Origin: Auanema rhodensis
Lineage: Eukaryota > Animalia > Nematoda
Assembly: GCA_964057225.1 (NCBI GenBank)
Contig: OZ059900.1
Span: forward strand, 6,076,001 to 6,140,000
Direction of reading: 5' to 3'
DNA: 64,000 nt
Shown here in pieces: positions 7,746 through 64,000 of this stretch. A model generated the notes under the pieces. That model saw only the letters and a list, made by a program, of their open reading frames with translations. It was not told where the DNA came from and made no database searches. Within the stretch, counting starts at the first letter, position 1; each line of letters opens with the position of its first letter. The translations under genes and the position numbers were made by a program.

Positions 7746-9796
7746 ATTATTAATCATATTTTCAAGTACAAAGTTTGCAAAAACGTAGTAAAATTGATGC
7801 ATACACTAGAATTATTATATCTGAATATATGTGTATATTTGTAGTTTTCAACGAATAAATTCAAATAAAAGCATTTGTCTTCAAAATTGTTCCCACGTTC
7901 TTACAGCCATTGCTCTCTAATACTCAAAATCCGATATCTCATTTAAACCAGTGAAGAGAGAGATAGAGAGAGAGAGAGAACAATTTAATTATGGAGACTC
8001 AAATTGGTTCTTGCACGTAGACCTTTCATGTCAGCAGCACTTATATGAAAATATTAGTAATTGCTCATAACATAAATATAAATATATATGTATATATATA
8101 TGTATATGATGAGTATAAGTATCAATTCAAAGTTGTTTCTCTTACTTCCTCAATAAACGTGATTTTAATTTCATTTCGGATATCTTGTATATGTTCATAT
8201 GATCATTAAAAGTCAGATTTTATATAAAACTATAAAGAAAGTATTTTTCCTACTTACATATGTCAAGTTATGTTGAATAACAACATATATACTCAACTAT
8301 AAAATAAATCAAAGATCATGTTCAGCGTTATTCTTAATCGCATTGGATCTGTCAAGAGCTGTTGTACTCGATTAAACTAAAGATATTTGTAGAGAGAGAC
8401 TTTAAGAATGTAATACATGAAACTAAACTATAAATAACCTCTGTTTGACCTTTAAGGACAACAACGTTAAAATATTTAAAAAGTTCAATTATTTTTGTAT
8501 TATGTGTATTTCTATTTGTATTCTAGAGTACAATGTTTACATTTGTTTGTATGATGATTCGTTTTGTGCTCTGTGCTATTAATAAAACAAAATATAAAAC
8601 AATGAGACCTTCACATCGGTTGGATTAAATAACAGATCATTTAAAGCGTATGCCCAATAATTATACAAAAGTTGATCATCATGATGAGAATGATTTGATA
8701 AACATAAACATAATCAGCTGAAAGCTGTTAACCAGAGAAATATATTAGGAAATTGGGGACCATATGAGTAACTTGTAACAAATAACGATAATTTGACATT
8801 GCTCAGTATACCAGATAACATTATTCTACCGGGAAGAAGAGCAAGATAGAGGGCAAACAAAACCATTTCTTAAATAGTCGTTGGGATAGAGATGCAGAAA
8901 GATTACGTAAGGATATTAAGAACTACATTCATATAGAACGACTTAATATTATGAATAAGGTATAGTGAGTAAAGGCTTTGTCAAATGGGAATGAGAAGGA
9001 TTGGAAGAATAGTATGGAGAATAACATCCTAAAGGTAGAAGCTAAAAGAACACACGGAGATAAATATTGAGATCATCTACATCATGCTCCAGCATAATCA
9101 TAATACAACTTTTTAAAAAGAATACTTGTAATATCATTACACCACTAAATTCACTATATCCTAGAATAATAGGGAAGACTGAGTATTAAACAGATACGAT
9201 GCGGTAGTTGGGTTTACATAAAAGGTGTGGGGATAACAGAAACAATAACTGTGAGATTATCAAGACCTTATGTGGCTATACATATGTGACTAAAGTTATT
9301 GTTAGTTATATATATATATATATAAATAGTTAGGAATATCATTAGTATTATACAACTTACAGGGGAGGGGGGGGATCAAATACTCGATCAAAACATAAAC
9401 GATCATCGAGTGAAGGGAGATTAAGATTGAGATTGAAAATTAGTAAAAAAAAGGATAAAAGTAGGATGAAATATATGCATAAAAAGAATTTGTACGAATA
9501 CATTTACATTGTAAATCTCGGACAAGTTTAAGAATAAGTTGAAAAGGGGAAAAAATATTAATATACATGTATGTACAGGTAATATATGCCTCTATCTATT
9601 CATCTATTTAACTATTTAGGTATAGTTATAGACAGATAGCTATATATGTCTATATGCATATATATGCATATATCGATAAAACTCTCTACATTGCATTAAT
9701 GCATTGTTATTTTAATAAAAAAATTAAAACATAGTTTGAAGAAAGAGAGCTGTTGTTCATTTGTCACGAAGACATACGGTGTGCTATACGTGGTGC

Positions 9797-12700: not shown

Positions 12701-15700
12701 CTTAATGTCAGCACTCTCAGATGGTGATTTATCATTGGCTGAAAAATTTATGTTTAGTATTAATAAATATCCTAAATTATATAAACATACTCTTATTTGC
12801 AGGAGGGAACGCTGCTGCTGTGTTTGAATCTCTCGACGGAGTTGAAAATGACTGAGCCAGCATATTAGTCAGAGGAACATTGTATCGATTTGATGAAACA
12901 TTTTGTTCTGCCATTTTTGATCCCGATAAAGCATTGATTATACTCAATATATAATTATAAACTAGTTCCGGTGACGAATGAGGTGGAAGCTGTGAACAGT
13001 TTGGTAACATGGATTCCGAAGGCTGTTGTTGTTGAATAGACGAGTTTTGTGTATTCTGACTATCCATGATTTGCTCTTGAAGCTTTTCATACGTTTTATG
13101 TTGGAAATTTGGAATACGTTCGTTTTGTAGTTTTGGATGTTGATGTAGACGTTGCTGCTCTTGCTGCCGTAACTGTTGCAACTGTTGTTGCTGCGATGGT
13201 TGAAGTTGTTGTTGCTGCTGTTGTAGTTGTTGTTGTTGCAATCGTAGTTGTTGCTGCTTCTGATGATGTTGTTGTAATCCAAAATTGATTTGCTGCTGAA
13301 TATGATCTGGTATTTTGAACGGCGTTAAGTGATTATTCTCTGAAAAATGTTGTATAGAATTAGCATAATGATGAATGTTCTTACCAATTGCACTATGTGT
13401 ACGCTTTAAACTACTGGAATGTCCGACTGTTGGTGGTGACATAACACTTCCATATGGAATACCAACATTAGTTCCGTGAGAACGGCCATTTGTTGTTTGC
13501 TGCATCAATCCAGTAGCAGCTGAACCAAAACCGGAAAAATTTCCTGTATTCATCTGCTTTGTGTTATGAGACAAAGGCAAAGATTCAACAGCAGGATGAT
13601 GTCGTACACCTAACGTCGAAACAGCAAGTCCACCAGATGGAGAACCATATCCGTTATTTCCACACGTGTTACTATTTGGTTGAATTGAACTTATAGAAGA
13701 TGGGCAAGCTTGACGAAATCCATTTACGCATGACCGCAAACCATTCTGATTGTGAACATTCCCTTGTCCAGGCAATACAGGTGGATTCATTAGTGAATTG
13801 AAGTTCATAGGACCTGCTGTATTTGGGGTATCGACAGAATTTGAGTTGTAGAACGGAGGTTGAGATTGTGAAACCTGTGGCTTATTGATTCCTATAGGAT
13901 TTTGATCAATAAGAGGAGATTGACGAAAGTTTGACTTTTGAGCATGATTAGATGTTTGTTGCATGAATGGTGTTACTGGCGTAGATATCGATATGGGTGG
14001 GTTGTTTTCTCGGAGCATTGGTGGAGAACATCCCATTGGCGTTGCCTGAGTATTCTGAATTGTACAGGACGTGTCATTAAACTGTGATGGTGTTGAAATA
14101 GGGATCGGTTGGTTCGATCCGCACTGTTGATTATTTGGTGATAGCAACTGCATAGTACTGTGTGGTAAAGGAAAACCAATGGAACTTTGATTGATTAAAA
14201 ACTGCTTTGCAGGCGGATTAGGAGGCTTTTGAATACCTATACCAGCCTGCATAACTGGAGATTGGGATTGATTTCCATTGGAAGGTTGGACCATTGTGTA
14301 GGATTTTGGAAATGAGTTAAGAATATCCTGTTGTGATATTTCCGAAGTTGTTCCATTGGATGTAGACTTTGGGCATCCTATTTGAGCTTGGCTCAATAGA
14401 GCAGCCATCATTTGAGATTGCTGAGTATTGTTAGGTGTTCGAGTTAGCATAGTAGATACGTTCAAAGATTGAGTATCTGTAGACTTTTGATCAGGGAAAC
14501 TCGTTGATACTGGACCGGTTTGTTGAACTTCAGCAGCTGACTGTCCAAGAATAGAACAAATCGAAAGTGCATTTTGTGGTTTCTGAACTTCTCCAGATGT
14601 CTTATTCAAGAAATTGCTTGTAGCAGCTGGTAGTCCGGTCGAACTTGATTTTTCTTTAGCAACTTGCATTGGCTGTGTTGACAGAGGCATGCTGCCATCA
14701 GATTGTACTTCACCAGATGTTTGAAGTATGGAAGGAAGGCCTAAAGTACTGTGCGCTGGTTTCATGTTGGATGTCTGTCCGAGTATGGACGAGATACCTA
14801 ACGGATTAGATGACTGGCCCAAAGTCGTAGGCTGCTGCGGCTGTCCAGGCTGTCCGGGCTGTCCGGGTACTCGAGAACTAGACGATGCAGATTGTGATGA
14901 TGGTCCAAATGCGCTGTGTTGTAAATTTAGTCCATTGGATGCAACACTCAATGCAGTTGTTTGGCTCATCGTTGTGGAAGATGGTACATACAGTGGAGAT
15001 GAAACAGATAGTCCAGGTGTGGTTGGTGGTAGCATTGCCTGTTGTCCAGAAATAGTATTTAAAAACGCCTGTTGATTTAAAGAAGTAACAAAAGGAGCAT
15101 TATATGGAGGTGGCGGAAATATAGAACTGGTGCTTGAGCAGGGATTGCGAATGGGAGGCGGTGTTGGAGAATAAAATCCATCCTGCTGTATCGGATTCTA
15201 AAATATCAAGGAATCAGTCTTAATCTTTTGGCTATCCATAAAAAAATACTTCCGCAAAGTAGGATTGTAATGGATTAGTGAACGTTTGAAATAACATAGA
15301 ATATGCTTACCCCGTCATCGTCTGTTTTCCTGGAAATAGTCTCAAAATGAACACTCGTTACAATCTTTTCATAATGCCAAGGATTAACGCATACATTCTA
15401 AAAGATAAAATGAATATTTGAAATACAAATAAGGATGAAACATACAGCTTCTTGTTTGTATTCGTAAGGGCATGAACACAGGGGTAGATTTTTTAATTCA
15501 TTCTTTTGAGCATGTGCATTTCGAAATATTCTTACATAAGTTACATGAGGAAATCCTTTTCGACCTGCCACCTATTAATTATATTGTTATTAATAAAATA
15601 TTAGAATACTATATAAATACCTGCAGCCGACCATCTAACGTTCGTATTATAGGAATACAAGGACTGGCATTAGTTCCATCTGACGCCACAGCCTGGATGA

Positions 15701-44864: not shown

Positions 44865-45109
44865 CATTTATCATCGTTTCTCAATATTATATTTGTTTTG
44901 AGAAGAGCATCAGTAATAAAATGTATTCAAGTCTTTGTAATTAAAATATTAATGATAGGCGTTTAAGTTTTATTTTATTTATTATATATTATCACATATA
45001 TATAGTCAATTTCAAGTAGTTTAACTATAAAATTTGATAAATATGAATATAATTTTTTGGTGCCAAAAACCACTGAGATCATCTTTTATAATACTTTTAT
45101 AGAAACAAA
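44865..45109 (+). repeat. 245-bp direct repeat, copy 1
   Basis: catttatcatcgtttctc...ttttatagaaacaaa; matches 48008-48252 with 3 substitutions by my reading. Confidence 0.95.
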
Positions 45110-46430: not shown

Positions 46431-47296
46431 ATGTGTATATCATCAGCAGGTCAAATAGTATACGGGATAGTAATGCTCGGTTGCTTGGTACTTACAGCAG
46501 TATCTTTGTTCACCCCAGGTGACTACATCATAAAAAATGATCTCAGATCAATTATTTCTCGCTTTACTGTATACATATTTTTATTCTTTAATTAATTCAG
46601 GATGGACACAATCTGAGCATAAAGATTCGCTTACTGATCTTTTCAGTAGCAGCGAAGGAATTATGCCATGGGCATGTGCTAGACGATTCAAAAGTGAGAC
46701 ATGTAGCACATGGTGGGAGGTAAACTCATAATATTCTTGAATTTAAAGTGAATTTTCATTGCACTTGTAGGAAACTCCCGGATGGCAACATGTCGTCATT
46801 GTCTGTATGTGGATGGCTTTAATTATTGAAGCATTCTGCCTAGTTTGGAATCTTATTGCTTTGTAAGTTATTTTGAAAATATTGCTAGGACATGTTCATT
46901 GAAAAACATAACATTTAAAAAAATATAACTTTCCTATGAAGTTTTAAAAATTTAAGATATTCATTACAGGTTATCATGTTGCTGCAAGAATTGTCTATTA
47001 CATCCAATTATTATTGCTTCAATCTGCATTAATATTCTCCTACTCATCTCAGTATTGGTGTACGGAATCAAAGGAAAAGAGTTTGTTATTTATACCGAAA
47101 ATCCTCACATACGTACTGCTGGACAGGTTGGTAGCAAAGTTTAAACTTTTTTTAAAACAATTTGGAATATATAAATTTATCCAACAATTTTCAGCTTGGA
47201 TACTCTTATATATTAGCATGCATTGCTTTGGCTCTATCAGTAGGAGATACTGTTTTATCGTTTGTTATTGTATGTTGCTCCAAGATATGCTGTTAA
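46431..47296 (+). CDS. Claudin/PMP22-like four-TM protein (nematode Clc-like), 5 exons
   Basis: Spliced: MCISSAGQIVYGIVMLGCLVLTAVSLFTPGW...GIMPWAC...C..WW...WQHVVIVCMWMALIIEAFCLVWNLIALLSCCCKNCLLHP...LLLISVLVYG...LGYSYILACIALALSVGD...CCSKICC*. Has the W..G.W..C..C first-loop pattern, GYSY before TM4, and a ttttttAG acceptor 5 nt before the ATG. Confidence 0.85.
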
Positions 47297-48007: not shown

Positions 48008-48252
48008 CATTTATCATCGTTTCTCAATATTATATTTGTTTTGAGAAGAGCATCAGTAATAAAATGTATTCAAGTCTTTGTAATTAAAATATTAATGATA
48101 GGCGTTTAAGTTTTATTTTATTTATTATATATTATCACAAATATATAGTCAATTTCAAGTAGTTTAACTATAAAATTTGATAAATATGAATATAATTTTT
48201 TGATGCCAGAAACCACTGAGATCATCTTTTATAATACTTTTATAGAAACAAA
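48008..48252 (+). repeat. 245-bp direct repeat, copy 2
   Basis: Near-identical to 44865-45109, offset 3,143 bp. Confidence 0.95.
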
Positions 48253-56378: not shown

Positions 56379-56963
56379 ATGTTTTTAAGTTATCTTATAT
56401 CAGCTATTGTATTTAATCAGCTACACTACGTTGTGGAAGCGATACAATGTTATGAATGCACATCGTCACAGGTAAATTGATATTCTTAACTCTTTCAATC
56501 TTTCAGTTTATTTAAATTTAGGGTAAAGATTGCTTAGCACAAGCTTCCAAATGTGAAACAGGCTTTTTTGGATGTACAAAAATTGCAGCATTTAATGGTG
56601 GAGTAGATAAAAGTTTGTAACGATTATATAGCCTTGAATTTTAATTTTTCATTAAAATATTAAAAAAAACATTTATTAATTTATTTAGTGGGTATGTGGT
56701 CCCCGGATCAAGAACGTCGTATATTCACAATGATAAGAGGATGTTCCATTATTCCCTTAGGCAGTAAGATTTACACTTTTTCTGTTTCTCAGTTTGATGA
56801 ATAACTTCTAGGAGCTGACATTTGTGAGCAAACATCAATTTTGGGAACTCGAATCATCAAGTGCACATGCTTCACTGATTTTTGCAATAGCTCTTTTACA
56901 CCCAAACTAGGCATATCAATAATGTTTTTCTTTTTATTCAGGTTTATTGAATTATTTTTCTAA
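56379..56963 (+). CDS. Ly6/three-finger (LU-fold) protein, probably GPI-anchored, 4 exons
   Basis: Signal peptide then IQCYECTSSQGKDC...C....FGCTKI...IRGC...C...IKCTCFTDFCN (terminal C-x-C-x4-CN motif), followed by a hydrophobic tail SSFTPKLGISIMFFFLFRFIELFF*. Confidence 0.85.
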
Positions 56964-57155: not shown

Positions 57156-58985
57156 TCACATTGAATCACTGTAAAATAGAAATTAGATTACTGTTAGAGA
57201 TTTCTCGTATTATTACTTGAATGAATCGAAAATGGTAACCATGAGAGTAACTTCTTTGTCGTAACCAGCGACAATTACCTCTACAGTTCGATCTTGATTA
57301 CCAGTCTTCACCTGAACTCTATTATATCCATTGCTAAGAAATTGATAACGAGCAAATACAGGCAAATCGTCAATTACACTAAGAACGTTCGTTTTCTAGA
57401 AATATTGATAGTTAATGAATAGCTTATCATATTCAGTTGTTACTTCAGGCGTCTGAAGTGCTTGAGAAACATTAACTATTATTTTAGCTCTAGGACAACC
57501 GATATCATCTTGAAACGCCAAACATAACGCTTTTATATTTTCTCTAAAGTCCTGTAATACAAGATGATTAAATTCCATCATTTTAGAATAAGAATACGTA
57601 CTTCATAAAGTTCAACGCCAGAATATTCAATCAAGATTGAATCGCTGCAATCAAACCAATTGCTAAGATTTCTGATAGCTTCGAGACAATAAAGAGGCTC
57701 CAGGAAGCGCTTTGCTGATGAAAAAACCAGTTGTTCTAATTTTATTCTGAAATTATTTGCTTAAAATCAAAGAAGACTGATATGAAACCAACTTGTTCTC
57801 AGCTATTGGCCATAAAGCTAAGAAGCCCCTATGTAAACACATGGCTTCAGTAGCAAATGAGAAATCAAATCCTAAATTAGAAGGACAGACGTCTGGGATG
57901 AGTTTCAAGCATTTCGTTCTTGAAATATCAATAAATTGAAAATAAAACTATTGTTTCACTTACTTCATGTTACTGATGAGTTCATCCATAAAATGAAATG
58001 GTAGTTGATGCGTATTAACATCTAGCAAAACTAAGGTTTCTGCACTTCCAATATTGCTAAGAAGCTCCTGAAAATGGTTTTAAATGCAACAATCAAAGCT
58101 AGAAGAATGCATACTCGCTGCACGTCAATATCCGCAATTGATCTATTCTCATCGCTCATTTTATTCTTGCAGATGTTCATGGCAATTCTGATTGACCTGT
58201 AAGTGTTAATCGTTTAGATATAAATTGCCTAGGCGCCATGACACCTTATGTATATTGATACTTCCTGTAGAGATATGTACTTAAACGATTGGAAAGAAGG
58301 ACCAGACATGTATTCAACAGATTTCTAAAAAATCATAAGTTATCACTGCATGTGGCAGAGACACTCACGAGTGATGGCTTCATGAATGGGCATACGAAGC
58401 TTTCACATTCACACTTTGGATGCATTGTCAAATGTTCAATATCTGAAGCATATTCATTTTCGCTTTTATCTGAATATCAAAATCTCACTGAACATAGCCA
58501 ATGCTTCAGCAACTCGAGAATCTTTACATAAACATCCTAAGTTCGAGACATCTACTTCTCTTAGAGCTATTCCCATGTTGTGCATAAAACGTAGTTTAGA
58601 CAGAAATCCTTCGACAGTTTTCGAAGTTAAAATATAATTAGCAGTGCAATTCTGGAAGAAAAATAATTATGAAAGTAATTTACTCAGTTATGCTTACTCT
58701 ATTATATCCAATAATAACGAACAAGTCATCACTATCATCAAGAATGAATTGATCAGAAGTTTTAGTAAAGAAATGCCTTCCAGCATTGGCAAAAGCTCTG
58801 TTGACTGTCTGGAAACAAATTATTAGAATGGGATGAACCATCGTGTATCATACCATTAATTCTAAACAATCATTGTTGTTTGCACCATCAGAATTAGCTT
58901 GAAAAGCTTCAAAAATTCGATAGTAGATATCATCGCACAGTGGCACAATGCGGTCTGGTGAGGCAGCATCTCCGGTAGTAGTCAT
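57156..58985 (-). CDS. F-box-like protein with degenerate LRR-like body, multi-exon
   Basis: N-terminus PLCDDIYYRIFEAF...CLELMTVNRAFANA fits the F-box pattern. Where I traced them, exons join through canonical short introns, ending ...TIFDSFNDSM* (TGA 57156-57158). Confidence 0.65.
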
Positions 58986-60990
58986 AATGTGCGGGTTAAA
59001 GATGGAAGCGTCAACTAAAACGTCTGAGAAAAGAGATAGAGTGATAAGAATGAGTAAGACAAGGACAATGATACAAATCAATAGCACTTTGAAATGAAGA
59101 AAAAAACGCGTTTTGATTCGGAAAATAAGCAATTGATTGCGTCGTCTTTTTCTAATTTAACAGATGATTATACAAAACTTAAATGTTATTATAAAAATGA
59201 ATGGTGAAAACTTCAATCAGCAGCTTATTCAGAAATGAATACGTTTTTAATTTTCAAAATTCATTTCCTATCCCATTTAAAACGATGAGGATAATCAGAA
59301 ATATTTCCAGCAAATTCAGATAACTCATTAGATGTATCTGCACGTGGGATAGCAAGGAAACGCTTGACTGGAATATTTTGTTTGTCACAATAGGAACTTC
59401 TCGACCGAGCCGCTTCATCTGGATTATCTTTTACGGCATTTAAATGAATAGTTTGAGAAATGAACTAAGATTCTTAAAGCAGATTATTTTAAATGAACAA
59501 TAGGTCAGCTTATTGATCACTAAAATGTTGGCACAATGCTCGAATACATAGATTTGAATAAGAAATAATACATAAATTTTCGAATATTAAACCAATACAC
59601 AATGAATATAAGTAGACAGAATGAAAGGTTATGGCGCAAGATAATTAATATTGAATGCTAAGAGATTAAAACTTTTACCCACTACATGTGAAGGCAATAT
59701 AAAATTAACCGTATGAGAAAATTAATTTTTCGCGGATAAAAACTAAGAGAATGTGTTAAATAATCGGCGCTAGTGCTCTGCCGAGCGACATAATTGAAAG
59801 CTTGAGAAAGTTAATGTGCGGAATATTGGTTAGATGAATGAATGAATATATTAGATATTCACTAACCTGTTCAATAAACATTGAAAATTTATATTTACAT
59901 ATAATATTCAATATCTCTTAATCTATAGAAATATAAAGAAAATAATGAAAGTGAAAAAAAATATATTTGTTTAAAATTTCATAATTTCACAATTTGAATT
60001 TTGAAAATTATGATATTTTGAGTGGTAATATGCTAATTTTAATTGGTCTCACCAATAAAATGTTTCAATGTTGTAGATGTATCAAGGTGTCAATATTCTT
60101 TTCGTTGGAAAATTGTTTGAGATAAAATACATTTCTCAATATCTGATAATTCACAAAGCTCAACTTCTTACGCTACCATATAAGACATAGAATTAGTATA
60201 TTATGTGATAACATTTAAAATCCCACAAAATCTCATGTAAAGAAGTACACCTTTCACATACGTAAATCTTATATAAATATATATATTCCTTTTTTTGTTC
60301 GCATAATTTATTATGACATTTATACGGATAAAATAAAAACAGACGAGTTTGGTCAATAACGAACAAATAAATGATTGGAAATTTCAATGGGAAGTTGACA
60401 GTACTAAACAGAAAAAATACGATATAGTATAATAAGAAAAACCATAAAAACGTACAAATCTACATAAAATAATTTTCAGATATTTCACTAATTAAATTTA
60501 TAATATTGAAGGTGATTTTGAAAAAAAGACAGCATGACAAGGTCAGCTTTTTGATTTTAAAGCGCTATGAAAACAGCTAGATGAATGAATTGATTCTCAA
60601 TATTCGACCATGCACATAATATTGCAAAACGGAAATAGACAAGTTCAGCCAATACATAAAATAAGATGAAAAAAACTTCGTAAGATTATATCATTGTGGT
60701 TATGAATTACGAGGAAACGGATGAGTTCAGATACACATCATGACTAAATAATTCGTTGGTATTAAATACTCTCACTGTTAATATATCATCTATATGTGTA
60801 TAATCAGTTTAACTTTTTAAAAAAAAGGTATAATTTGATGAAATGCTGTGATGATTACTTGTTTTCAGCTATCTGCTTTCACTTATTAGCAAAATCATTT
60901 GGCTCACAGCAGCAATTCATTCTAGAATTCAAAAAATTTTAAATAATTAAAATTTTTAAAAATATGAATAGGTATAACTATAGTACAACA

Positions 60991-61518
60991 TGAGATCATT
61001 TGCCCTCCAAAAAAAAAGAAGAAGAAAATTCAAAGAAAAAGGTAATATTGGTGCTCTACTACATTGTATTGCAACCAATATTCATGAGATCATAGCAGCC
61101 CAAAGGTGCAATACATATACTAGGTATTGATTAATATTATGTTGAGTAAATACAAAATGAGATCAAATTGCCCACAGCCCGCTAAAAAATAGCTGAGAAT
61201 ATTGGATGATTAAGCCATACTAGAAAATCACCAATATTCATGAGATCAGTCAGCCCATAGAATAAATTTAAAATAAATTTATGTTGTGTAATTTGGGGTT
61301 AAACCACAGTGTTTGAGATCATAAGTGCCCACAATGATGAAATATTGTTTGTGTGAAATAATTTTCACAAAAACGAAAATGAAATAAGAACTGAGTGAAC
61401 AGAAAGAAAGTGAAAAAGCATTTACGAAATAGTGTTTTAAGAGCAAATTCAATGAATGTATAGAATAAGTCAGATTAACATAATATTAAGTTAATCCAAG
61501 CATGAGATCACAAAGCCC
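60991..61518 (-). promoter_or_regulatory. Array of six GGGC-N3-5-UGAUCUCA elements (bantam/miR-58-family 8-mer sites) in the putative sad-1 3' UTR
   Basis: TGAGATCA on + at 60991, 61085, 61158, 61241, 61314 and 61503, each followed 3-5 nt later by GCCC. Confidence 0.75.
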
Positions 61519-62084
61519 AAAAAGAATTAAAAAGTAAGAATTGGATTGGATTTAGAAATTTTGAAATGCCTGTGGATTAGAAGAACATTTCCAAATGAAA
61601 TGCTCATAAATCAGTTGATGTTAAGAGCCAAATTCAAATCCTATTTCATATATCCATCCTTTAGAAAAAGGGTTGTAGCAGGGTTGAAAGTGGGCGTTTT
61701 TCAATTTTAAATGAAATAACTGTATTTTGTTTGAACTATGCTATCTTTCCGTTTTCAGCTCAATATGTGTATGTGTCATGTGCTCGAAGTTCATGTCACC
61801 ATCATTCGAGAGATAAAGTAATTCTAAGAAGCATTATATTAGTAATAGAATATGAAATATAACATACTGAACAAATCGTTGTTGATTCTAAAAACATAGT
61901 ATTCATGCTCTTCAACTAATATCGTCCACATATATATACATATATGTTTATATAAATTTATATATTTAACTGAAAACATGAATAATAATTTGTGCAAATA
62001 GCATAATAAAGAAACTAACCAATAATTTTTGTAATCACCAAAATGTTTAATCAACATGCTAGATGCTAATTCTAGAACACCAGT

Positions 62085-64000
62085 CTAACGCCTTCCTAAA
62101 CCAATATAATAGTTTTGATAAATAATCAAGTTGTGTATATACCTGTGGAAGTACTCGAGACACTACGTTTTGCTGAATGATAATTATGGTCAACAGATCC
62201 AAAATCACCTTTTGCGTATTCCTAAAACAAGTTTTGATAAGAAGATTGGATAAGTTGAATAGATAAATTACATTTTTATACATATTTATACTAATGTTGC
62301 TTTCAGAATCGGAACATGCTGAACTGACAGATGAGTCTGACAGACGCCGCGGACGTACCATCATTGCTGTATGCTGTGCTCGTTCAGCTCTGAAAAAAAA
62401 ACACAATCACATTAAAATGTTGGTCACGATATTACCTCGATTTACTACTTGATTTCTGAATAATTGTTGATAAATGTTCAACTAAACGTTTGAATCGACG
62501 TGTCGGTCCAGCCAATAAAATGAACTGAACAATGTAAGTTGTTGGATCATTTGGCTGTTGTTGTGATGAATTAACAATGTCAACCTTTAAAAATAGATAT
62601 ACGTAGATATATTAATATATAATATTCGTACATTCATTTTAATGCCACGACTAAACATGTTACCACCTGCCGTCGGTCCACGTTTATATTCTACACGGAA
62701 GGAATTCTGTCCAATAACAGAGTGGCTTAGTTCATGAATCTAAATAAGGAAAATGGAAAATGGAAGATTAATATTATTTTTAATAAAAAAATAATTCTAG
62801 CGATTTAAAAAAACTAACTGTCAAAAATGCTCGAATAAGCTCTGCTTTAATTCCATTTAAAGTTTTTCCTTGAATTGGCAAACAATGAGTATCATCACGT
62901 TCAACACTAATGCTCGAGGTTAAAGATCCAAACCACGATTTTTTCACCAAGCTGAACATTATGTTATAATTGTAAAATTTGAATATTTTAAGACATACTC
63001 GCTCGTATCGATAAGTTGATTATCTTCGTTATCGCTTTCCACAGACGAATTGGCTGGTTTTCTACGATGGAACCTAGGCGTTCCCAAGAATGAGTTTTTA
63101 ATATTGGTCAGCTTGGAAATCCATGGGCCGGACATGGATCCTAAACTCGTTTGACTGGCGCCGGTAGTTAATCCAGTTGTCGATGAAGATGTTGACGAGT
63201 TTCCTATGTTACTCACTATGGCTGACTCAACCATACGAGTTGCATTTGATTCCTTAAGAAATAGGGCTTCAAGTTTAAGGCAAATATTATCATTTATACT
63301 GACCTCTGAATCATTAGATAAATGTCTTTGACTACTATCTCGTCGTGGCTCAGAACCGCTTGAAATTGAAGCATATGCCCCAGACGACTTGGCGCTTCCA
63401 CAACTACTGCCACTACCACCATGTCCATCTTTCATTTCAAAGTTGACCGCTCGTGCATCATTTTCAATAGACACTCGTCGGGTGTTTTCAGCTAAGCCTT
63501 GAATTTCACCAGTAGATGAGCCATATGCATTATTGACAGCAGATCTGAAACGAAAGATTGATTAGAAATAAATGTCAAAATAAGACTTATGAACAAACCT
63601 TGCAGATTGGATAACGCGATCTTCTGTTCGAGAATAAACTCCAATAGCATTCTTGAGAAATTGCTCTCTTGGCGAACATTTTGGAGATTCGGTTGGAGAT
63701 CCTCCGAGACTATTAAAGCGTCCAGAACGAGTATGACGTCTTAAAGATTAAATATGTGCACTTTGTTAACTACGCTATTACAACGTGATATAGAAGCATG
63801 AAAAATTTAACAAAAACTTTGAGAAAATCATTATTTTCGATTAAGTACCCCATAAAAGTACATTCAAGTTTGAAACCAAGTTCATTGTTGTGTTTTGAAT
63901 AAATCATGTTCGATAAAAGTTCTAATCATGTATTCACTTACCCATATGTCTTGCGAGGATTTATCGGACTTCCGTCAGCAATTCCTCCAATCATATAACG
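62085..64000 (-). CDS. sad-1: SAD/BRSK serine-threonine kinase, C-terminal half (kinase domain lies beyond the right edge)
   Basis: Motifs IKNSFLGTPRFHRRK and LVKKSWFGSL, a KA1-like domain ([37 protein letters not shown]...FILLAGPTRRFKRLVEHL) and RPRRLSDSSVSSACSDSES. The proximal last exon ends STGRR* at 62085. Confidence 0.92.

Follow-up and report, generated by a model that had tools for sequence, protein, structure and literature searches.

Six putative miR-58/bantam-family sites with an invariant GGGC box in the 3'UTR of a rhabditid sad-1/BRSK mRNA

The 3'UTR of the SAD-1/BRSK gene in an Auanema-like rhabditid contains an array of six bipartite elements which are probably target sites of the miR-58/80-82 (bantam) miRNA family, each with a predicted supplementary helix in addition to its seed match. 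In the window (the whole 64-kb stretch of DNA analyzed here), the 8-mer TGAGATCA lies on the + strand at positions 60991, 61085, 61158, 61241, 61314 and 61503, which amounts to six copies in 528 bp. Each copy is followed by GCCC after a spacer of 3, 5, 4, 4, 5 and 4 nt (units 1 to 6, respectively), and in five of the six the second box is extended to GCCCA. A first-pass annotation of this DNA had described these six copies and their GCCC partners at a distance of 3-5 nt, and all of them were recovered at the positions it gave. On the minus strand, which for 6/6 units is the mRNA sense, the element has the form (U)GGGC-N3-5-UGAUCUCA.

The individual units, all on the minus strand, differ mainly in their spacers and surroundings. 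Unit 1 (60991-61006) reads AGGGC-AAA-UGAUCUCA on the mRNA and is the one unit with A in front of its GGGC. Unit 2 (61085-61102) reads UGGGC-UGCUA-UGAUCUCA and is directly followed, in the 3' direction on the mRNA, by a hairpin of 9-10 bp. Unit 3 (61158-61174), with UGGGC-AAUU-UGAUCUCA, has an extra GGGC 3 nt further 5' on the mRNA, while unit 4 (61241-61257), with UGGGC-UGAC-UGAUCUCA, is a paralogue of unit 2 and is followed by the same hairpin stem with a different loop. Unit 5 (61314-61331) reads UGGGC-ACUUA-UGAUCUCA, and unit 6 (61503-61519), UGGGC-UUUG-UGAUCUCA, lies closest to the stop codon. Neighboring sites are separated by gaps of 73-189 nt; this spacing is wider than the optimum for cooperative sites and counts against the miRNA-site reading.

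Such a concentration of the 8-mer is far from what the composition of the window predicts. Its first-order composition predicts 0.019 copies for a stretch of 528 nt, and the Poisson probability of finding at least six is about 6e-14. Compared with the earlier estimate of roughly one chance copy per strand per 64 kb, dinucleotide shuffles of the whole window gave a slightly higher value, 4.25 copies on both strands together. The remaining ~127 kb (both strands counted) hold four other copies, at 9068, 45074 and 48217 on the + strand and at 46545 on the minus strand, and the GCCC partner is absent behind all four of these outlying copies. None of the four (0/4) forms a hairpin, as a miRNA gene would. 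Within the UTR, TGAUCUCA is the commonest 8-mer and outranks every A/T-rich word. The + strand of the 1.8-kb UTR region contains seven GCCC in total, six of which are the partners of the units; the seventh is found 3 nt behind unit 3. Separately, two of the outlying copies fall one each in nearly identical stretches of ~75 nt on the same strand (45029-45103 and 48172-48246), 3.1 kb apart; this pair is a local duplication or a dispersed repeat and is unrelated to the array.

The array lies in transcribed, spliced and non-coding sequence. Logan contigs from four runs, representing four samples of one 2019 study, were mapped on 58500-64000 and showed no differing letters. They skip ten segments of 44-202 nt, identically in 4/4 runs, which are bounded by CT..AC on the + strand and thus correspond to GT..AG introns on the minus strand. 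Past the last junction (61868/61823) the contigs continue unbroken as far as 60328-60344, except in one run, where they stop at 60455. This defines a terminal exon at 60328-61823 (minus strand) which consists entirely of 3'UTR and encloses the whole array, an assignment made from assembled contigs rather than single molecules, with the strand inside the exon taken from its continuity with the spliced part. As far as these contigs tell, the array is therefore located in the sad-1 3'UTR, one of two possibilities named in the first-pass annotation, and not in a separate lncRNA, which was the other.

We assign the minus-strand gene to SAD-1/BRSK because three consecutive exons match consecutive thirds of the KA1_BRSK domain (Pfam PF21122). 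These exons, together spanning 62436-62951 on the minus strand, lie at 62819-62951, 62630-62739 and 62436-62582 and match PF21122 positions 4-36, 35-67 and 77-108 of 113, respectively; the orthologous loci encode Pkinase, UBA_BRSK and KA1_BRSK domains. The gene name given at first reading is thus borne out by both the exons and the domains of the orthologues. The stop codon was located by tracing the reading frame through the observed exons and is a TAG at 62085-62087 in the penultimate exon (61868-62094, minus strand), which also holds the first 217 nt of the 3'UTR. The 3'UTR is at least 1.71 kb long, with a G+C content of 28.5%, and the array occupies the part ~520-1050 nt past the stop codon. 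When three alternative splice variants were considered, the stop remained at or above 61741, and the array was non-coding in every variant tried.

The 3' end of this transcript probably lies just past the end of the contigs. Both polyadenylation signals that had been named as candidates, AATGAA at 60916-60921 and AATAAA at 60307-60312, are present on the minus strand. The contigs read through the former (AAUGAA on the mRNA) and end 16-32 nt before the latter, so the AAUAAA is the likely distal poly(A) signal; a UAUAAA at 60319-60324 (minus strand) also lies just past the contig ends. The stop codon is separated by 217 nt from a downstream 44-nt GT..AG intron within the 3'UTR (61824-61867, minus strand), the joint of which was seen in 4/4 runs. 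A stop upstream of a 3'UTR intron is an NMD mark in many animals; here the layout might also reflect alternative C-terminal isoforms. The next gene downstream of sad-1 is on the same strand (58500-58993); it too is expressed, and introns of 45-46 nt are spliced out of its transcript. An operon uniting the two genes is unlikely, because the start of the downstream gene is ~1.3 kb beyond the sad-1 3' end. Elsewhere in the window, the most G+C-rich part (0.39-0.40) holds an uninterrupted ATG-initiated ORF of 752 amino acids on the minus strand (12777-15035), which has no Pfam match and whose exact sequence is absent from a collection of 15 billion proteins.

The larger box has the features of a canonical site for the miR-58/80-82 family. 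In all six units UGAUCUCA is perfectly complementary to nt 2-8 of a guide with the UGAGAUCA seed, has an A opposite nt 1 and thus forms an 8-mer site, in agreement with the seed match originally recognized for bantam and miR-80/81/82. According to the contigs, all six of these 8-mers lie in sense orientation within the 3'UTR of an expressed mRNA. The smaller box is placed where supplementary pairing would occur. With a 4-nt spacer GGGC faces guide nt 13-16, and the spacers of 3 or 5 nt shift this register by a single position (offsets of -1, 0 and +1), so that the second box of 4-5 nt and the target loop of 3-5 nt together reproduce the geometry of a seed-plus-supplementary site. In human Ago2, the supplementary chamber has room for a helix of at most 5 bp at g13-g16, the target loop leading to it may be 1-15 nt long and affinity increases more than 20-fold when supplementary pairing is optimal (10.1101/476960). 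The sad-1 units have an architecture like that described for human Ago2, in that the seed match is succeeded by an unpaired bridging loop and then by a box that would form a short helix of no more than 5 bp, although that work measured affinity using the human protein and designed targets, whereas the match of the sad-1 units is geometric (10.1101/476960). A box composed purely of G:C pairs in a UTR of such low G+C content would be the expected appearance of a strong supplementary helix.

The proposal that GGGC is a supplementary block therefore stands as far as its position is concerned, since it faces guide nt 13-16; the family member with GCCC in its 3' half, which it predicted, did not appear among the bantam-family sequences examined from the small-RNA sets of three nematodes. 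These sets, from B. xylophilus, L. sigmodontis and H. polygyrus, each contain several abundant bantam-family members, and none of the bantam-family sequences examined from them carries GCCC at nt 13-16. The nearest candidate for a partner is Bantam-d of H. polygyrus (UGAGAUCAUCGCCUAUUAUUCGCU), which has GCCU at nt 11-14. [quoted passage not shown] The 3' halves of the family are very diverse in the three nematodes, as illustrated by UGAGAUCAUCACCAUAAGCACA, UGAGAUCAUGCCACAUCCGUCU and UGAGAUCAAAGGUUUUAGGGUAU, and because this diversity is lineage-specific, it is plausible that a lineage-specific family member with GCCC at nt 13-16 exists in the present species.

The history of the array can be partly read from the units themselves. 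Units 1 and 3 have the sequence TACAA(C/A)ATGAGATCA in common, units 2 and 4 share 19 identical bases, and the 73-nt intervals behind units 2 and 4 can still be aligned. Because these units and the intervals following them are recognizable paralogues, a block of ~160 bp with two sites was evidently duplicated long ago. The statement that the sequence between units is mostly unrelated, and that the array is no simple tandem repeat, accordingly needs to be divided. It is sound for the flanks, whose mean ungapped pairwise identity, anchored on either box, is 0.316 vs. 0.300 expected from base composition, and for the repeat structure, as Tandem Repeats Finder reported nothing across the array at a score of at least 30; it does not extend to units 1/3 and 2/4. 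A simple tandem or satellite repeat was rejected on the same two observations. The 8-mer and GCCC, in contrast to these flanks, are invariant at all 12 box positions in 6/6 units. Outside GGGC, a U at +1 is shared, one further position is shared weakly and the remainder shows random identity. Paralogous units in which flanks and spacers have reached random identity but the boxes have not changed indicate that purifying selection has acted on precisely these 12-13 nt. The array would then have expanded by duplication of a two-site block, with selection afterwards maintaining only the two boxes. A further sequence, CTGAGTGAACA / CTGAGTGAAC, occurs at 61390-61402, 78 nt past unit 5 and thus at the usual unit spacing, and lacks GCCC; possibly it represents a seventh unit that has decayed, and this would account for the distance of 189 nt that separates unit 6 from unit 5.

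The two hairpins mentioned above are alike in their stems. The one adjoining unit 2 (61043-61083, minus strand) is built from the stem sequences AAUAUUGG/CCAAUAUU and has a predicted free energy of -14.1 kcal/mol over 55 nt, and the one adjoining unit 4 (61197-61239, minus strand) uses the same stem sequence with an unrelated loop, at -13.7 kcal/mol. While the stems are identical (AATATTGG / CCAATATT), the loops, which are 22-26 nt long, are unrelated; each hairpin abuts a seed site. Preservation of the stem together with replacement of the loop means either that the stem is under selection or that a small inverted repeat was inserted. Strong hairpins 3' of the site are confined to these paralogous units; those at units 5 and 6 are modest, and units 1 and 3 have none. 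Taken together, the six units are modestly more structured than background (P ~0.02-0.03, with paralogous units counted as independent). The predicted energy required to open the seed matches is 1.75 kcal/mol, vs. 2.84 kcal/mol for background, a non-significant trend toward accessibility (P = 0.06).

Comparison with other nematodes suggests that the array is of restricted distribution. Single-exon protein searches (word index and HMMER) retrieved distant orthologues only, with identity of at most ~65% in the variable exon, and one sad-1 exon found no match in these protein searches. Three orthologues had sequence past the last coding exon: L003, of strongylid type (GCA_000507365.1), L004, on a 24.5-kb Logan contig, and L007, on an ENA contig. 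The contig with the best exon match ends before the 3'UTR and so lies outside the comparison. Within 1.3-4 kb downstream of sad-1, neither TGATCTCA nor the shorter GATCTCA and TGATCTC occurred in sense in L003, L004 or L007, so the sites are absent from the orthologous 3'UTRs of these three distant nematodes, which counts against the miRNA-site reading. Because all three orthologues are without sites, the long UTR and its array appear to be lineage-specific. A convergent neighboring gene is kept in synteny in L003 and L007, and in L007 it caps the sad-1 3'UTR at less than ~1 kb. A conserved exon of this gene at ~56700-56900 on the + strand of the window has the same relative position downstream of sad-1 as in L003 and L007, with a gap of ~5 kb here vs. 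~1 kb in L007.

Several other explanations of the two boxes deserve consideration. They could form a bipartite site for an RNA-binding protein with two RNA-binding modules, or a protein could read GGGC next to a seed site for a miRNA. A pair of boxes that do not vary, joined by a flexible spacer of 3-5 nt, would suit such a protein; hairpins flank some of the units, and GCCC at nt 13-16 is not known from any family member. We nevertheless regard this explanation as unlikely, considering that the larger box coincides exactly with the 8-mer site for the miRNA family that is most abundant in nematodes and that the range of spacers is just right to center the smaller box on guide nt 13-16; we know of no nematode RNA-binding protein with a motif matching UGAUCUCA or UGGGC. 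Dimeric DNA-binding proteins also typically recognize bipartite motifs with a variable spacer, and the next minus-strand gene is located 1.5-2.5 kb downstream of the array. The array could represent a transcription-factor array or enhancer in or behind sad-1, for instance one serving that gene at ~58.5-59 kb. A single orientation in 6/6 units, a location inside a transcribed exon and the identity of the 8-mer with a known miRNA site make this highly improbable, and no transcription factor with the array motif is known to us. For both the DNA-level and the protein-binding explanations, the bipartite form is the sole positive evidence.

The shared ancestry of the units raises a different question, namely whether the boxes are simply functionless relics of a tandem duplication that took place locally in a 3'UTR which is long and evolves fast. 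The recognizable paralogy of units 1/3 and 2/4 and of the intervals following them fits such a remnant, as does the lack of the array in distant orthologues. Neutral decay, however, would not spare precisely the box positions, and here flanks and spacers have decayed to chance-level identity, yet the boxes are identical in every unit; together with the blank result from Tandem Repeats Finder, this renders a functionless remnant very unlikely in our judgment. Finally, the + strand of the array resembles a series of miRNA 5' ends (UGAGAUCA...) placed 73-94 nt apart, which could suggest a cluster of bantam-like miRNAs or small RNAs starting with UGAGAUCA on that strand. We find this scarcely credible. 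When 100-nt windows were folded in 5p and 3p registers, no unit gave a pre-miRNA-like stem holding the 8-mer: the folds reached -7 to -18 kcal/mol with most z-scores near 0, and the significant ones arose only from the AAUAUUGG/CCAAUAUU hairpins of units 2 and 4. Splice evidence is restricted to the minus strand, and Rfam gave no match in the whole window at the gathering score. At E<=10, the array returned only chance-level matches to C/D snoRNAs and MIR171, all with E>3. Weak C/D-like matches to SNORD127 (E=6.8; 61326-61401, + strand) and snoZ155 (E=5.8; 60841-60917, + strand), which have a C box and poor terminal stems, are judged to be due to chance.

Clustered sites for one miRNA family in one long 3'UTR are a recurrent arrangement, known from lin-14 with lin-4, from lin-41 and hbl-1 with let-7, and from Drosophila hid with bantam. 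Those arrays are conserved across species and have known partners, whereas the sad-1 array appears lineage-specific and the 3' half of its partner is predicted. A preference for one family member is also classical, as pairing beyond the seed in lin-41 confers specificity of this kind. Other RNAs, such as CYRANO for miR-7 and the circular CDR1as, stand out by the strength or the number of their sites for a given miRNA, and target-directed miRNA degradation (TDMD) requires that the 3' end of the miRNA be paired extensively, in most cases at just one site. The sad-1 array differs from such triggers and sponges in that it has 4-5 conserved nt beyond the seed and belongs to an ordinary protein-coding mRNA. 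Extensive complementarity to the miRNA 3' end, well beyond 4-5 nt, is not found in the units. A role as a TDMD trigger, which was among the functions initially suggested, is therefore disfavored, because the conserved nucleotides beyond the seed number only 4-5.

Silencing of a neuronal kinase outside neurons, an idea which came from the same source, has a direct precedent in C. elegans, where miR-58/80-82 redundantly destabilize pmk-2 mRNA outside neurons with switch-like potency (PMC4335502). In that species, the nervous system shows no visible expression of a mir-58 reporter, and neuronal genes are enriched in miR-58 sites (PMC4335502). The pmk-2 system resembles the sad-1 array in its seed family, in concerning a kinase that acts in neurons and in the logic proposed here for sad-1, by which a broadly expressed miRNA family would remove the mRNA elsewhere (PMC4335502). 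It differs in gene and species and in that its function was shown genetically (PMC4335502), whereas the sad-1 array, with its six 8-mers each accompanied by an invariant GGGC, is known from sequence. A literature search found no published link of sad-1 to miR-58 or to miRNA regulation.

Ordinary miRISC-mediated repression is the mechanism with the best support, and it could operate on the sad-1 mRNA as follows. Each site would pair with guide nt 2-8 and present an A opposite nt 1 (UGAUCUCA); after an unpaired target loop of 3-5 nt, (U)GGGC would then form an all-G:C supplementary helix of 4-5 bp with guide nt 13-16(17). Six sites of predicted high affinity would recruit miRISC efficiently, so that the sad-1 mRNA would be destabilized or silenced wherever the family is abundant. 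If the family is abundant in most non-neuronal tissue, as in C. elegans, this would confine a kinase of synapses and polarity to neurons. A more specific, and rather doubtful, version is that this nematode lineage has evolved a miR-58-family paralogue of its own, with GCCC(A) at nt 13-17, and that the six sites in sad-1 are dedicated to it. This paralogue would then be nearly the sole reader of the UTR, which could act either as an all-or-none tissue switch or as a high-capacity neuronal sink that titrates the paralogue.

In summary, our observations point to a familiar kind of switch-off signal and do not indicate a new mechanism. The array leads to the prediction that one family member of this species carries GCCC at nt 13-16, and if the private paralogue should prove real, it would represent a recent, datable co-evolution of a miRNA paralogue and its target array. 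The array is also a natural experiment, in which paralogous units remain alike solely in the 8-mer and a G:C box of 4-5 nt at the spacing of the Argonaute supplementary chamber, and it offers a compact substrate for gauging the contribution of supplementary pairing in vivo. If the sites work, SAD-1, a conserved kinase of synapse assembly and neuronal polarity, would join pmk-2 among the neuronal genes that the housekeeping miR-58 family keeps off elsewhere.
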